Below, one piece after another: positions 30,656 through 55,405 of a stretch of 64,000 nt of DNA (positions are counted from its first letter, which is position 1; the number at the start of each line of letters is the position of its first letter). Position numbers and translations under genes: made by a program. The notes under the pieces were generated by a model that was not told the origin of the DNA, did not search any database, and worked only from the letters and a program-made list of their open reading frames with translations. The stretch comes from Octopus sinensis (lineage: Eukaryota): assembly GCF_006345805.1 (NCBI RefSeq), contig NC_043011.1, forward strand, positions 63,190,464 through 63,254,463, given 5' to 3'.

Positions 30656-30690
30656 TCACGGGTCATGTTTGTATTCTTCTAAGTTTCGTG
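30656..30690 (-). CDS. Gene A exon 4 coding part (P-RNLEEYKHDP*); exon 30646-30690
   Basis: Acceptor TACTTTTCAG, donor AAG|GTAAAT. The 45-nt exon equals exon 4 of B in length. Confidence 0.85.
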
Positions 30691-30760
30691 CTGAAAAGTA
30701 TTATTTAATATATTTTGTGAATGACTTTTACGTATGCAGGATATCTATATAGCGTATAAT

Positions 30761-31120
30761 CTATCTATCTATCTATCTATCTATCTATCAATCTATCTAT
30801 CTATCTATCTATCTATCTATCTATCTATCTATCTATCTATCTATCTATCTATCTATCTATCTAACTATCTATCTATCTATCTATCTATCCATCTATCTAT
30901 ATATCTATCTATATATCTATCTATCTATCTATCTATCTGTCTATCTATCTATCTATCTATCTATCTCTCTATCTATCCATCCGTCTGTCTGTCTGTCTAT
31001 CTCTCTCCCCCCTCTCTCCCTCTCCCTCTATCCCTCTATCTGTTTATCTATTTATCTATCAATCTAACTATGTATCTGTCTGTCTATCTCTATATCTGTC
31101 TATTTATCTATCTATATGTA
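30761..31120. repeat. (CTAT)n tetranucleotide array
   Basis: Direct reading. Confidence 0.95.
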
Positions 31121-31179
31121 TATTTGTGTGGGGGTGCGCTTGTGTATGTGTATGTGAATGTGTGCGTGTGATTTTGTTA

Positions 31180-31455
31180 AGCTCGTGACATTGTGGTTAG
31201 GGCATCTCGGTCACGATCGCAAGCTAAAGGGTTCACTTCCAGCTGATACGATGAGACCTTGTACAAAGCTGGCGATAATTCGTAATATATTTATTCCAAT
31301 GGGCCTGAGTTCTTACAGACTGTGTCACTCTGAATCGCCGTCAGCGTTAAGTGTACGCGTGTCTGTAGAGTACCGAACACCTTATACGTTGATTTCCCGA
31401 GCAGGCTGTTCTGTTAATCGGATCAACTACTTGAGCCCTCGTCATCGTAAACGAC
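31180..31455 (+). mobile_element. Degraded tRNA-derived SINE (8.7-9.5 kb family)
   Basis: TGTGGTTAGGGCATCTCGGTCACGATCGCAAG head; the body is inverse to 8746-8900. Confidence 0.55.
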
Positions 31456-31489
31456 GGAACACCCGTTAGTAATATATGTTCTTTATACC

Positions 31490-31682
31490 CACAAGGGGCT
31501 AAAATAGAGGGAACAAAAGGACAGACAAGCGGATTAGTCGATTGCCTCGACCCCAGTGCGTAACTGCTACTTAATTTTATCGACCCCTAAAGTATAAAGG
31601 CAAAGTCGACCTCGGCGGAATTTGAACTCAGAATGCAACGGCAGACGAAATACGGCAAAGCACTCGCCTGGAGTGATAACGG
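31490..31682 (-). mobile_element. SINE (16.8 kb family)
   Basis: AAAGGCAAAGTCGACCTCGGCGGAATTTGAACTCAGAA. Confidence 0.85.
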
Positions 31683-51292: not shown

Positions 51293-52859
51293 ATATATAT
51301 ATATTTAGTATATTTCATGGCATTATTCTTCATAAATTTTCTCGTGAGAAATATATATCTAATAAATAAATAAATAAATAAATATATATATATATATATA
51401 TATATATATATATATATATATATATATATATATATATATATATATATATATATATATATACATACATATATACCTTTCTGTCGCTCTAGCCATTTAAACT
51501 TGACGTGCTATTTTCAGTTTCTTTATACCAAATCTACTCCGAAGTACCTTACTCTGCTCACCACTGGGACACATACAAAACGTTGGCAATGGGAAGAAAA
51601 CGTCTTAATACACAGCTACAAGTATATATATTTGCTGTCCTTTAAAATTATTTCGTATACACCGTGCCATAAATTCCCAAATACCCAAATCTTAACAAAT
51701 AATCTCAGTTTAGCATAACGAGTTTACGGCGTACGTACCCCAAATCTCCGTACCCAGCACGAAACATTACACAACATTGCTTACAACGAATGGGTTCCTT
51801 TATAATGCAAACTTTTCAGAATGAAATATGCAAAGCAATATATATATTTCCCACGAGAAATTTTTATCAAATATAATGCTATGCAAAATATTATATATTG
51901 AAGTTTAATAATATTTATAATACAGACGAGATAATTATCGTTGTATTTATAAATCGGTTTTTCATTGTTCCGATATCCATAATATCTACCGATACAAATA
52001 TGTATCATATATGTATGTACGTTTATGTATGTATATCTATATCTATATTTATCTATCTATATCTATCTATCTATCTATCTATCTATCTATCTATCTATCT
52101 ATCTATATATATATATATATATATATATATATATATATACAAAATGGGAAAAGAACACAAAACATCAAGAAGACGATATAAAAAAACACGAACGGGTCAT
52201 TCGCAGCCTTTAATCTTCAGTCAAGAAACGAATCATCCTCGAAATTTAAGCTGATTAATCTTGCGATTGCTCCAATCTGACCAGCCCCAAGGAAAAACTA
52301 AGCTAAGAGCATTAGATTCTTTGGAAAAAAGCTTCGAATGCATACGAAACAAGGACGGAAAAACGGACGATGTTACACGAATATGAATACAAAAATAATA
52401 CGAAAAGACAATAATAATAATAACATATATATATGTATGTATATATATGTATGTATGTATATATGGATATATGTATAAATTAAGTTTAAGATAAAACCAC
52501 TATTAGGCAATTCAAACAGTGATAGACGTAAACAAAAAATTTTAAAAAAAATTAATCAACATAATATATAATATATATATATATATATATATAAAATATA
52601 AAAATTAAAACTGTTCGGCCATGAAAGGGGACTATGTTGAAAAATAAATCATCAGATATCTTGTATTACGTTTTTTTTTTTGAGGTTCAATACTTTTTAG
52701 ACACCCTTCGTATGCACACACACACACACATACACACACACATATATATATATATATATATATATATATATATATATATATATATATATATATATGCATG
52801 CACATACATACGTATATAATAAATATTTAAGAAAGGAAATAGGATAGCCTATAATTGCT

Positions 52860-53790
52860 GGAGATATTTACTCAACAAAATGTCCAGGCTGGGAGACCCA
52901 TGAGAGTGTTTACGTAGGGATTATTGTCCTTTCATAACCCATAGAGCACAGGGACATGGAACCTGAATGGTTCGAAAATGTGTGCAGTCCGTGGTTTCGG
53001 TTGCGTTGAACCACATTCCCCTGTCTACATTCACACGTTATTCTCCTCTTTCATGTTCCTGTGGTGCAATCTTTCGTTGCTTCCGGAATATAATTATATG
53101 TGCTAAAGAAATCAGTGCCTCTGTCACGTTGTCTGTCTGTTGTGGGACACATGCCAGTTTCTTGACGAGTAACTCTGTGGGGAAACTCTTCCTCATGTCG
53201 AACGATTTGTGGTTGGGATTATAGTTTGTTACCGGTTTTATTATTGTTGCAGTTGTGGTTACGGTTGCCAGCGATGTTGATATCGCGGATCTTGTGGTTA
53301 TCACTATTGTTTCTGACGTTGTCCTTAATGTTGCTGTAGTTTTTCTTGTGGGTGCTGATGGTGTTGAAGGTGGAACTTTTTCTGGCGGCAATGTTATAAT
53401 TGGTAGTGTTGTGTGTGTGTGAGGTGTTGTGGTTGTGGTTGATTTCTGTGTATATTTTCTTTGTAAAGTTTTGTAACATCGAGTGATTTAGTTTTGTTTC
53501 TTGGTGATTTGCGATTTCTAGCCACTTGGCGGCCGAATTAACAGATGTATTCTTTCTCCTTTTCCTTCTTTATCCCTTCCCTTGTTTTCTCTCTGTCGCT
53601 CTCTTTCTTCCCCTCTCTCTTGCCCGCTGTTTCCTCTGCCTGCTACTGACACTCGACCTATGGACAGCGCTTCCTTTTCTATCCCCTTTTCACACCGGTT
53701 GCTTACGTGACTGACCTGCTATTTGTCGTTTTCTTATCTCTAGGATCCCTTGACATTTTGACCCTTGGCCATAATTTGCTCGTTTCTTGC
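52860..53790 (-). mobile_element. Putative 5'/ORF1 fragment of a non-LTR element (Thr-rich low-complexity ORF)
   Basis: Overlapping broken ORFs 53038..53391 and 53219..53479 follow a purine-rich leader. No diagnostic domain is recognised. Confidence 0.3.
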
Positions 53791-54124
53791 TGGTTTCAAT
53801 TTTGTACAATATTTTAAATAACGTCTATTCACATTCGTGTGTCCACTGTATATTGTTTTCTTTCCTCTCGGCCCCAAATTCTTCGCTAATTTCGTGGGCA
53901 CGGCCAGTATGGGAAGCTCTCAGTTTTAAGACTGAGGGTGCCAAACGGCATAATAATATCTTGTTCATAACTAATGAAGAATTAGGGAGCTCCTGTGTCT
54001 GTCTCACTGTTCGTTGTACACTCGGTATACATTGTACATCTTTACTCCTTTTATTAACAGTAAGGTTCACACACACACACACACACACACACACACATAT
54101 ATATATATATACATATATTAGTTG

Positions 54125-54950
54125 AAAGTTAGAGAATAACAGGAAACGAAGAGATGTGTATGAACAACAAGTTGTTGTAATTGTTTGACGCTCCGGAAAG
54201 TGAGAGGGTCTTTACGTTTCTAGTTTACGGTTTTCAACAGAATGGAATAAGTGAAAATAAGCAGAGTGAGAATAAAAGAAAATAATTTGGGTTTAGAAGT
54301 CAAGCATGGCGATCGGTTGGAAAAGGTAACGGGTAGACAGGAGAAGTAGAAATAAAGGGATATAATAAAATATTGGTGATCTGAAACGAATAAAGCGTGT
54401 GTATTTGAGGATGTGTAAATGTGGGGCTGTGTGGATAGGGGCTAGTGAATTTGACGCCTGTAGATGTGCGTGTGTGTGTATGTAATGTGTGGGTGTGTAA
54501 TGTGTCTGTGCATAAGTGCGTGCATCAGCGTGGATGATGGTGTGTTGTGCGGGTGCTGGGATGTCCTCAGTGACAGTGTGCGGTGGAGTGTTGTGGTTTC
54601 GTAGTGTGGTGGTGTGAGTGTGTGGGTATATGGCGGTAGGTATGTGTGTGTGGTGTGTTTGACGGTGGGATGTGGACAGAGGAGGTATCAATGAAGAGAG
54701 AAATGCGTAGGAGGGAAGAGAAGTAGTAGGTGTCAGAAGAAGAGAGGAGGGGAATTGACCTCATTTTGTTCAAAGGCATGAAGAGAGAAGATTCATTCCT
54801 GTCACGGCGAGGACGGGTTTCCAGATGGCCCCTGTGCAAAGACATTCCTGAACACAGACAGGTGTAGTATAAATGAGGAGTGAAGCGGAAATGGCGCGAG
54901 ACCGAGGTGCCATTGCCGAGTCGGATAGATTACAAATGCACGGTCCATAT
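54125..54950 (-). mobile_element. Penelope-like 3' fragment (endonuclease C-terminus plus terminal repeat with hammerhead-like motif)
   Basis: The minus strand reads SRHFRFTPH...SGMSLHRGHLETRPRRDRNE. The terminus is homologous to 35420-35825. Confidence 0.55.
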
Positions 54951-55356
54951 ATATATATATATATATATATATATGGTCTTTTCCATACCAACAAATCTAC
55001 TAGGTGAAATTGATTAATTTTATTAAATTAATTATATTCCACCCTTTATTGAATATTGATATATATATATATATATATATATATATATATATATATATAT
55101 TTCTTTATGTATGTATGTATGTATATATCTATGTATGTATATATATATATATATATATATATATATATCAATGTTATATTCATATATAATTATTTATTTA
55201 TTTATTAGATATAACCACACATACACGCACAAATGTATATATATATGTCTAAGTACGTGTTGATGCGTGTTTGTCTCTATCTGTGTATATGTGTGTACGA
55301 ACTCTTTCAGATTAAAAGATTATAATATTTTGAGAAATATACAAAAATACTTTTAC

Positions 55357-55405
55357 CTCTAATGAGAAGACTGAGTAAGATTACGTATATCGACGCAGAC
55401 ATCAT
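55357..55405 (-). CDS. Gene B exon 1, signal peptide MMSASIYVILLSLLIR-G, 49 nt coding, phase 1
   Basis: ATGATG...AGAG|GTAAAA. Joined with exons 2-4 it gives an intact 94-aa ORF. Confidence 0.9.

Follow-up and report, generated by a model that had tools for sequence, protein, structure and literature searches.

A tandem octopus family of small six-cysteine peptides with a fixed scaffold and mature codons that probably diverge faster than their introns

What drives neighbouring copies of a gene apart when their cysteines stay in place and the residues between them change? The question is raised by three minus-strand genes of four exons each, A (30656-38725), B (44195-55405) and E (14217-24771), in the window of 64,000 nucleotides of Octopus sinensis DNA analysed here. 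A preliminary description of this DNA proposed diversifying selection on a fixed scaffold; the interval that it covered begins exactly at the stop codon of A and ends at the ATG of B, so that E falls outside. A, B and E are small predicted secreted-peptide genes in a tandem array. We regard it as probable, though short of secure, that they belong to a tandem octopus family of small six-cysteine peptides in which the scaffold is fixed, the mature codons diverge faster than the introns and the surface serves recognition.

The A and B copies look intact. In gene A, exon 1 (38677-38725, 49 nt) holds the ATG and the signal peptide MMSTLSYVMFLCLVIT, and the next G is split by the intron, whose donor reads gtaaat. 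The mature peptide begins in exon 2 (34353-34449) with Cys1-Cys3, exon 3 (33648-33736, 89 nt) carries Cys4-Cys6, and exon 4 (30656-30690) encodes an acidic C-terminal tail that ends in a TGA stop, with the ancestral TAA in frame three codons 3' of it. Gene B consists of exon 1 (55357-55405, 49 nt; ATG and signal peptide), exon 2 (45991-46093; Cys1-Cys3), exon 3 (45331-45419, 89 nt; Cys4-Cys6) and exon 4 (44195-44238), where the TAA stop after the C-terminal tail is followed directly by ggtaaat. All introns of both genes are GT-AG with identical phases 1/2/1, and the model of E has these phases as well. The proteins of A, B and E are absent from a collection of 5.8 billion proteins, and thus nobody has annotated them.

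In the product of each of the three genes, a signal peptide of some 16 residues leads straight into a mature peptide of 73-78 residues with six invariant cysteines in the spacing C-x7-C-x16-C-x8-C-x7-C-x11-C. From the hydrophobic N-terminal exon we infer secretion; a hydrophobic 16-residue N-terminus encoded by exon 1 is present in all members of the family. A profile of exon 2 only, searched against 1.84 billion proteins, gave a single match, XP_052830341 of Octopus bimaculoides, 'uncharacterized protein LOC128249836' (E = 1.6e-4). The exon-3 part of this protein, unused in the search, matches too (tblastn E = 6.6e-7 for gene A, 1.4e-5 for gene E and 3.1e-4 for gene B). At the LOC128249836 locus (XP_052830341/XP_052830342), located on CM046618.1 around 49.42-49.45 Mb, three genes of the family lie side by side. 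Like the genes of the window, these encode a signal peptide and then a six-cysteine domain of the same spacing, in four coding exons with an exon 1 of 49 nt, an exon 3 of 89 nt and phases 1/2/1; they likewise stand in tandem on one strand, with an alignable upstream region. In one neighbour, by contrast, Cys2 and Cys3 are separated by 14 residues instead of 16, and intron 1 has a GC donor. The complete four-exon structure was found in A, B, the gene of the O. bimaculoides protein P0121 and the paralogue g3, and for exons 1-3 in g1. Identity to A over the core is 34-49%, and the O. bimaculoides array is a different locus from that of the window, so the similarity is at the level of paralogues only. 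In an alignment of the six members (A, B, E and the three O. bimaculoides relatives) the family-wide spacing is C-x7-C-x14/16-C-x8-C-x7-C-x11-C; all six cysteines are invariant, as are one Leu (after Cys4), one Phe (before Cys6) and one Gly. Text searches of the literature found no paper on this six-cysteine octopus family, which is known so far from octopus only, elsewhere as uncharacterized proteins.

Gene E departs from this structure at its ends. Its exon sizes fit the family, and the open reading frame is intact in exon 2 (16189-16291; Cys1-Cys3) and exon 3 (15589-15677, 89 nt; Cys4-Cys6). Exon 1 (24723-24771), which encodes the signal peptide, has lost its canonical donor through a 9-nt deletion and is now followed by 'tc'. 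Exon 4 as modelled in the preliminary description (14217-14257) is doubtful: its acceptor is not the orthologous one, it brings in a seventh Cys, and the 76-nt segment around it occurs again 1.7 kb away, at 12465-12540, and is missing from A and B. Three conserved splice signals are absent from E: the donor of intron 1, the orthologous acceptor of intron 3 and the donor-like motif that follows the stop codon. With its core exons kept and these signals lost, E may be decaying or rewired.

The observation that the paralogues diverge quickly between invariant cysteines held when identities, charges and cysteines were rechecked. Over 58-59 core columns we count 26 identical residues for A/B, 22 for A/E and 15-16 for B/E, each within one of the 27, 22 and 15 counted before. 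Non-coding DNA can indeed be aligned over long stretches, as had been noted by eye: 33564-34199 with 45246-45879 (72% over 655 nt) and 38368-39170 with 55059-55852 (70% over 825 nt). In global alignments, where shuffled sequences give a floor of 46% (maximum 50%), the whole of A intron 2 (33737-34352), which served as neutral reference, is 75.8% identical end to end to B intron 2 (45420-45990), and the region upstream of A (38726-39175) is 75.4% identical over 450 nt to that of B (55406-55855). The A upstream region can also be aligned to that of E (24772-25221) and to that of one O. bimaculoides paralogue. The exons of A and B are 61% identical, against 76% in intron 2 and 75% upstream, and in the identity profile they appear as dips between intron flanks of up to about 80%. 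Non-coding identity is patchy, at 52-88% over short stretches with the top value in the 100 nt before exon 4, so the size of the exon excess varies with the reference used; measured against every aligned non-coding column, raw exon identity is lower at p = 0.013.

At the codon level, dN for A/B is 0.54; intron 2, taken whole, has diverged by 0.29, which makes dN 1.8 times as high (Fisher p = 9e-4). Scaffold codons were defined independently, from the three O. bimaculoides paralogues only. At the 46 non-scaffold codons dN reaches 0.81, or 2.8 times intron 2 (p = 3.5e-7; p = 5e-5 against all aligned non-coding DNA), as compared with 0.15 at the scaffold codons. A and B use the same codon at each of the six cysteines. 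Changes fall almost equally on codon positions 1, 2 and 3 (0.42, 0.40 and 0.37); 21 of the 62 codons show no change, and 23 differ at two or three positions. For the pairs with E, an exon-over-intron excess is not demonstrable because the intron alignments that involve E are near saturation.

By the method of Nei-Gojobori, omega is 0.75 for A/B (bootstrap 0.35-1.53), 0.72 for B/E and 0.33 for A/E, the last significantly below 1 (p = 0.004). Across the mature region dN/dS exceeds 1 in none of the three pairs; the only value above 1 is that of B/E at non-scaffold codons (1.19). The proposal of diversifying selection thus stands as far as rapid change and a dN above the intron rate are concerned, but the classical sign, a dN/dS above 1, is lacking in all three pairs. 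The pattern named beforehand as contrary to it, a dN well below dS and also below intron divergence, is not that of A/B, where dN is 0.54, dS 0.71 and intron 2 divergence 0.29. These comparisons support rapid change on a fixed scaffold, and positive selection on the mature peptide is likely. In A/B, dS is raised to the same extent as dN. Positive selection by itself would not lead one to expect this, and homogenisation of the introns or an exon-specific mutation bias may lie behind it.

Two other accounts of this pattern deserve weight, and we hold each of them to be rather unlikely. The introns may be no neutral yardstick: gene conversion or regulatory constraint would keep introns and flanks alike, and the acceleration of the exons would be apparent only. 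Relative to the intron value, dS is as inflated as dN (1.0 at non-scaffold codons), non-coding identity is blocky, and upstream regions can be aligned even with a paralogue at another locus, all as this account would have it. Conversion tracts would, however, normally take exons of 89-100 nt along, and exons that stayed different within converted tracts would themselves require selection for diversity. The dS of 0.22 at scaffold codons, albeit from few sites, is close to the intron value and argues against a generally older history of the exons.

Alternatively, constraint may be relaxed, with redundant or dying copies drifting neutrally and the cysteines not yet hit. An omega close to 1 yet not exceeding it in A/B and B/E, the equal differences at the three codon positions, the splice signals missing from E and the absence of the genes from the protein collection searched are consistent with this. 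A and B nevertheless keep their open reading frames, all six splice sites and the six Cys codons despite the low exon identity; from the observed per-site difference, we calculate a chance of about 6e-4 of keeping six TGY codons. Codons defined as scaffold at another locus are conserved here, the non-scaffold dN is beyond what drift produces, and the omega of A/E also argues against relaxation. Rapid divergence around a retained scaffold thus remains our preferred reading for A and B.

The mature-peptide charges given in the preliminary description match ours exactly, with 13 acidic and 6 basic residues in A, 6 and 11 in B and 8 and 12 in E. Net charge is -7 for A and +5 for B, and -1, -1, +2 and +4 for the other members; A is the outlier in this range. 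The charge flip between A and B is real as a count, whereas its directional bias is marginal: 15 charge-changing sites go one way and 4 the other (sign test p = 0.019, uncorrected, one of six pairs tested). That acidic A and basic B form the putative halves of one heterodimer would fit their opposite charges, their adjacent genes and their similar upstream regions, but is very improbable in view of this weak bias, of the other members' charges, which give no clean acidic/basic pairing across the family, and of the even number of cysteines in A and B, which leaves none free for an intermolecular bond.

Presumably the six cysteines form three disulfides. AlphaFold models of the octopus homologue are all helical with a core pLDDT of 84-92, the input being the homologue with the window's exon fragments as alignment (seven rows, made of fragments), and the mature domain is predicted to be a compact helical bundle; we infer that the variable sites lie at its surface. 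Profile and Foldseek searches gave no significant Pfam, PDB-sequence or PDB-fold match for the peptides. The N-terminal domain of repulsive guidance molecules (RGM) is a disulfide-stapled helical bundle. Like it (PF06535; PDB 4uhy, 6z3m), the octopus domain would be small, helical and held by disulfides; RGM_N belongs to a large protein with a GPI anchor, whereas the octopus domain is predicted to be a free peptide. Membership in PF06535 was rejected, with scores below the Pfam gathering threshold and no profile-level homology to the solved RGM N-domain. A remote relationship, which would make the peptides putative soluble growth-factor binders, is suggested by RGM_N as the best Pfam match of A (E-value 0.008-0.012, over the C3-C5 region), by the RGMB N-domain 6z3m_I at ranks 1 and 4 of two Foldseek searches and by a central C-x8-C-x7-C spacing equal to that of RGMA chain 4uhy_C. 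It is highly doubtful all the same: A scores 16.9 bits where the gathering score is 24.2, five of the six members have no match at all, hhalign of the six-member profile with RGMA gives a probability of 0.1% (E = 0.5), the Foldseek matches to 6z3m_I have E-values of 4-5, probabilities of 0.11-0.13 and TM of 0.37-0.38, hmmsearch of PDB sequences finds nothing, and the outer cysteine spacings differ.

The scaffold is new, and the evolutionary behaviour is of a known kind, that of peptide families in venoms, defence and pheromone signalling. Conotoxin superfamilies are comparable hypervariable, cysteine-rich secreted peptides of molluscs. Water-borne pheromones such as Aplysia attractin and the Euplotes Er pheromones are small secreted helical bundles with three disulfides that diverge fast between paralogues or species; they are shorter, at about 40-58 residues, and their cysteines are spaced differently, and the resemblance of the octopus family to them is one of general description. 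MgCRP-I of mussels is a multigene family with four-exon genes, an invariant six-cysteine frame in a hypervariable mature region and preserved Cys codons, whose divergence has been attributed to duplication and positive selection (PMC4558851). The octopus family shares the invariant frame, the variable mature region, the kept Cys codons and the four exons, and in A/B the mature exons are more divergent than introns and flanks, as in MgCRP-I and conotoxins. The frame of the latter two is C-C-CC-C-C (knottin-like) in peptides of about 25-40 residues, with the mature peptide in one exon and a conserved pro-region with a dibasic cleavage site, whereas the octopus genes encode a helical domain split over three exons and have no pro-region. 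Nor does the A/B pair have a signal or pre-pro region that is far better conserved than the mature part: its signal peptide (9 of 16 residues identical; dN 0.29, below the mature value) has changed no less than the non-coding DNA on either side.

On the favoured reading, about 17 scaffold positions (the cysteines, one Leu, two Phe and a few others) would have been held after duplication, and the remaining codons replaced wholesale, faster than the surrounding introns. The disulfide-stapled helices would provide a stable frame on which surface residues set what the peptide binds, so that duplicates may have been pushed apart toward different binding partners, with the swing in net charge as a by-product or a part of this change. 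Most probably the peptides recognise a changing target outside the cell, for example in saliva or venom, chemical signalling or defence. The stronger version is that of a new, octopod-restricted family of secreted helical peptides with three disulfides, in which diversifying selection drives the mature exons apart: some codons stay frozen, others are replaced entirely, and dN as well as dS outruns the introns. We put it forward tentatively, as a serious candidate that falls somewhat short of even chances. If true, it would represent a cephalopod counterpart of conotoxin-style hyperdivergence on a helical scaffold, serving in saliva or venom, chemical signalling or defence.

Cephalopod genomes contain many lineage-specific genes of unassigned role. 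Here a compact and clearly structured family, for which no Pfam model, solved relative or literature was found, occurs in tandem arrays at at least two loci, and its fixed cysteines, replaced surface and conserved introns are the mark of outward-aimed peptides in cone snails, snakes and mussels. Expression in salivary, skin, sucker or reproductive tissue would make the peptides natural candidates for octopus bioactive peptides; the genes would also lend themselves well to asking why synonymous sites outpace introns in exons of this type. If not expressed, they would be just a decaying orphan family.

The 9.3-kb intron 1 of gene B contains a minus-strand non-LTR retrotransposon (47900-51020) with endonuclease and reverse transcriptase open reading frames. 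A recent segmental duplication at 59381-64000, a copy of 26261-30885 with 92-93% identity, holds the 3' end of gene A and its downstream flank. Exon 4 of a fourth gene, Z (63771-63805, minus strand), is identical in sequence to exon 4 of A, with the remaining gene past the end of the window.

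The best reading of the array is a peptide family of the octopus lineage, secreted, helical and stapled by disulfides, in which a small scaffold is kept and the rest is replaced quickly after duplication. The three minus-strand tandem genes A, B and E share one four-exon plan with intron phases 1, 2, 1: a hydrophobic signal peptide comes from the 49-nt exon 1, three cysteines each from exons 2 and 3, and a short tail from exon 4. Exons 1 to 4 lie at 38677-38725, 34353-34449, 33648-33736 and 30656-30690 in gene A, at 55357-55405, 45991-46093, 45331-45419 and 44195-44238 in gene B, and at 24723-24771, 16189-16291, 15589-15677 and 14217-14257 in gene E, the last exon of E being that of the preliminary description. 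As the interval named in that description is bounded by the stop codon of A and the ATG of B, gene E falls outside it. Six-frame profile scans of the window found no further family copies besides these three genes and a copy of exon 4 belonging to a partial fourth gene, Z.

Searches of Pfam and of PDB sequences gave no significant homologue, nor did word-indexed searches of 5.8 billion proteins with gene A and with the A/B/E alignment; since the word-indexed searches gave no match, the proteins of A, B and E are unannotated in the sources of that collection. A profile built from exon 2 of A, B and E in translation, compared with 1.84 billion representative proteins, gave a single match, XP_052830341 ("uncharacterized protein LOC128249836") of Octopus bimaculoides (E = 1.6e-4), whose exon-3 part also aligns, though exon 3 was left out of the query. 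The LOC128249836 locus on chromosome CM046618.1 contains three family genes in tandem, with exon sizes and phases as in the window; it is a different locus, and the similarity is at the level of paralogues only. A neighboring gene there (positions 4624-8947 of the O. bimaculoides locus) is annotated with a 176-aa product; its first three exons correspond to a typical member of ~80 aa, and the remainder of the annotated product probably does not belong to it. A full-text literature search found no paper on the family, with only an analogous mussel family surfacing, and no expression data on the family were found.

Over a core of 58-59 residues, 26 positions are identical between A and B, 22 between A and E and 15-16 between B and E, essentially the counts made by hand in the preliminary description. 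The A/B alignments it had reported outside the exons are real, with 75.8% identity over intron 2 from end to end and 75.4% over 450 nt upstream, against a shuffled floor of 46%. Its observation as a whole is confirmed, with reservations for the intron-1 donor, the exon-4 acceptor and the exon 4 model of gene E.

Substitution rates were estimated by the Nei-Gojobori method for the mature region from exons 2 and 3, and the whole of intron 2 served as the reference (divergence K) in order to avoid choosing alignable pieces only; K of the upstream region is similar. For A/B, dN is 0.54 and dS 0.71 (omega 0.75, bootstrap 0.35-1.53), with an intron 2 K of 0.29. The corresponding values are 0.58, 1.77 and 0.33 (below 1, p = 0.004) with K 0.57 for A/E, and 0.80, 1.11 and 0.72 with K 0.54 for B/E. 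Because the intron alignments with E are near saturation, the ratio of dN to intron divergence is trustworthy for A/B only, where it amounts to 1.83 (Fisher p = 9e-4). To guard against circularity, the scaffold (17 columns, including the six invariant cysteines) was set from the three O. bimaculoides paralogues alone. In the 46 non-scaffold codons dN between A and B is 0.81, giving a ratio of 2.8 to the intron divergence (p = 3.5e-7 versus intron 2; p = 5e-5 versus all 1008 aligned non-coding columns), and in the scaffold codons it is 0.15, with all six cysteine codons identical. In a sliding window, both exons dip to ~60% identity between A and B and the intron stretches on either side stay at ~80%. 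The differences are spread equally over codon positions 1, 2 and 3 (0.42, 0.40 and 0.37); 21 of the 62 codons are unchanged, and 23 differ at two or three positions.

These results partly support the proposed diversifying selection on a fixed scaffold. For A/B, dN is neither well below dS nor below intron divergence, and in fact lies above it, but dN/dS does not exceed 1 in A/B, A/E or B/E. The inflation of dS equals that of dN; synonymous sites are saturated in most pairs. Three explanations cannot be separated on these data: positive selection with codons hit more than once, an exon-specific mutation bias, and gene conversion that has homogenized the introns. The scaffold codons of A and B have a synonymous divergence of 0.22, near the intron value, which speaks for positive selection with multiply hit codons, on a basis of about nine synonymous sites. 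Neutral decay of A and B is unlikely, given that both retain intact frames, splice sites and cysteines, that they conserve a scaffold defined independently of them, and that dN outside the scaffold exceeds the intron rate.

Fast replacement within a conserved frame is known from conotoxins. The same behavior is known in the mussel MgCRP-I family (PMC4558851). In contrast to both, the family in the window has a different scaffold, predicted to be helical and split over three exons, without a pro-region, and represents a new scaffold with a known evolutionary mode.

Neutral decay may apply to gene E. Its intron-1 donor has been removed by a 9-nt deletion, leaving "tc" at the site, and it has no acceptor orthologous to the exon-4 acceptor of A and B. 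The exon 4 modeled in the preliminary description, which adds a seventh cysteine, lies inside a 76-nt segment that is absent from A and B and has a second copy 1.7 kb downstream. An outright pseudogene was nevertheless dropped as a description of E: a GT one base upstream combined with an AG 14 nt inside exon 2 could keep the frame, and omega for A/E is 0.33. The two 76-nt copies form a direct repeat (12465-12540 and 14202-14277, 95% identity) flanking 1.66 kb that contain the decayed orthologous exon 4 and 3' flank of E; each copy has a possible acceptor and an identical 13-codon open frame to a TGA.

The acidic and basic residues number 13 and 6 in A, 6 and 11 in B, and 8 and 12 in E, essentially as reported before. 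The charge flip between A and B is real as a count. Net charge is -7 in A, the outlier, +5 in B and +4 in E, compared with -1, -1 and +2 in the octopus relatives. Relative to A, B is shifted toward positive charge at 15 sites and toward negative charge at 4 (sign test p = 0.019, uncorrected for six pairs), so that the evidence for a directed change is weak. A purely cationic antimicrobial role is disfavored by the wide spread of net charges.

An AlphaFold2 model of the octopus homologue, with exon translations from the window as alignment rows, has an all-helical core (mean pLDDT 80.6; 84-92 in the cysteine-bearing region), with helices predicted at mature residues 2-22, 29-43 and 48-61. Two Foldseek searches against the PDB gave no match better than E = 3, the N-terminal domain of RGMB taking rank 1 in one of them and rank 4 in the other. 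Pfam RGM_N is also the best match for A, below threshold, and the central spacing C-x8-C-x7-C is common to the family and RGMA. Membership of RGM_N is unsupported, as one of six members matches, with a score below the gathering threshold, and the hhalign probability is 0.1%; the likeness is recorded as a resemblance. The cysteine spacings of the Kunitz, Kazal, crustacean hyperglycaemic hormone, saposin, chemokine and defensin families do not fit.

Exon 4 of gene Z (63771-63805), the only part of this gene in the window, has the sequence of A exon 4 and lies within a segmental duplication (26261-30885 and 59381-64000, 92-93% identical) that continues past the window end, which implies a very recent fourth gene located mostly beyond it. 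The duplication is direct, includes A exon 4 and ~4.4 kb downstream of A, and contains an internal 225-bp tandem copy (27347-27571 and 27572-27794). A donor-like motif, GGTA(A/T/C)(A/G)T, occurs directly after the stop codon or at most 12 nt away (30641-30655 and 44187-44194 in the window; 17303-17310 and 25444-25451 in the O. bimaculoides locus). Genes A, B and Z share it with two O. bimaculoides paralogues, E has lost it, and it suggests a putative intron in the 3' untranslated region.

The window is AT-rich (~35% G+C), with dense microsatellites and transposon remains; Rfam and tRNA scans of it gave no match. A non-LTR retrotransposon (47900-51020, minus strand) lies within the 9.3-kb intron 1 of gene B; its endonuclease and reverse-transcriptase ORFs are interrupted by one or more frameshifts or stops. 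Among named relatives, the best match to its reverse transcriptase is a protein from Argonauta hians (59% identity), and an ENA contig reaches 73%. In intron 1 of E, a run of four long ORFs (17402-21082, minus strand; 226-317 aa), without Pfam match, is probably another retroelement. A 267-aa ORF at 6644-7447 (minus strand) encodes a mariner-type transposase (Pfam Transposase_1, E = 5e-21). A short interspersed repeat of ~190-270 nt, with 75-91% identity between copies, occurs in both orientations within introns and in intergenic spacers across the array (42633-42873, 44677-44948, 46711-46982, 47566-47827, 28649-28854 and 61692-61926). Between 54000 and 58000, partly over the promoter side of B, the plus strand has a strong excess of G over C (GC skew 0.22-0.25).
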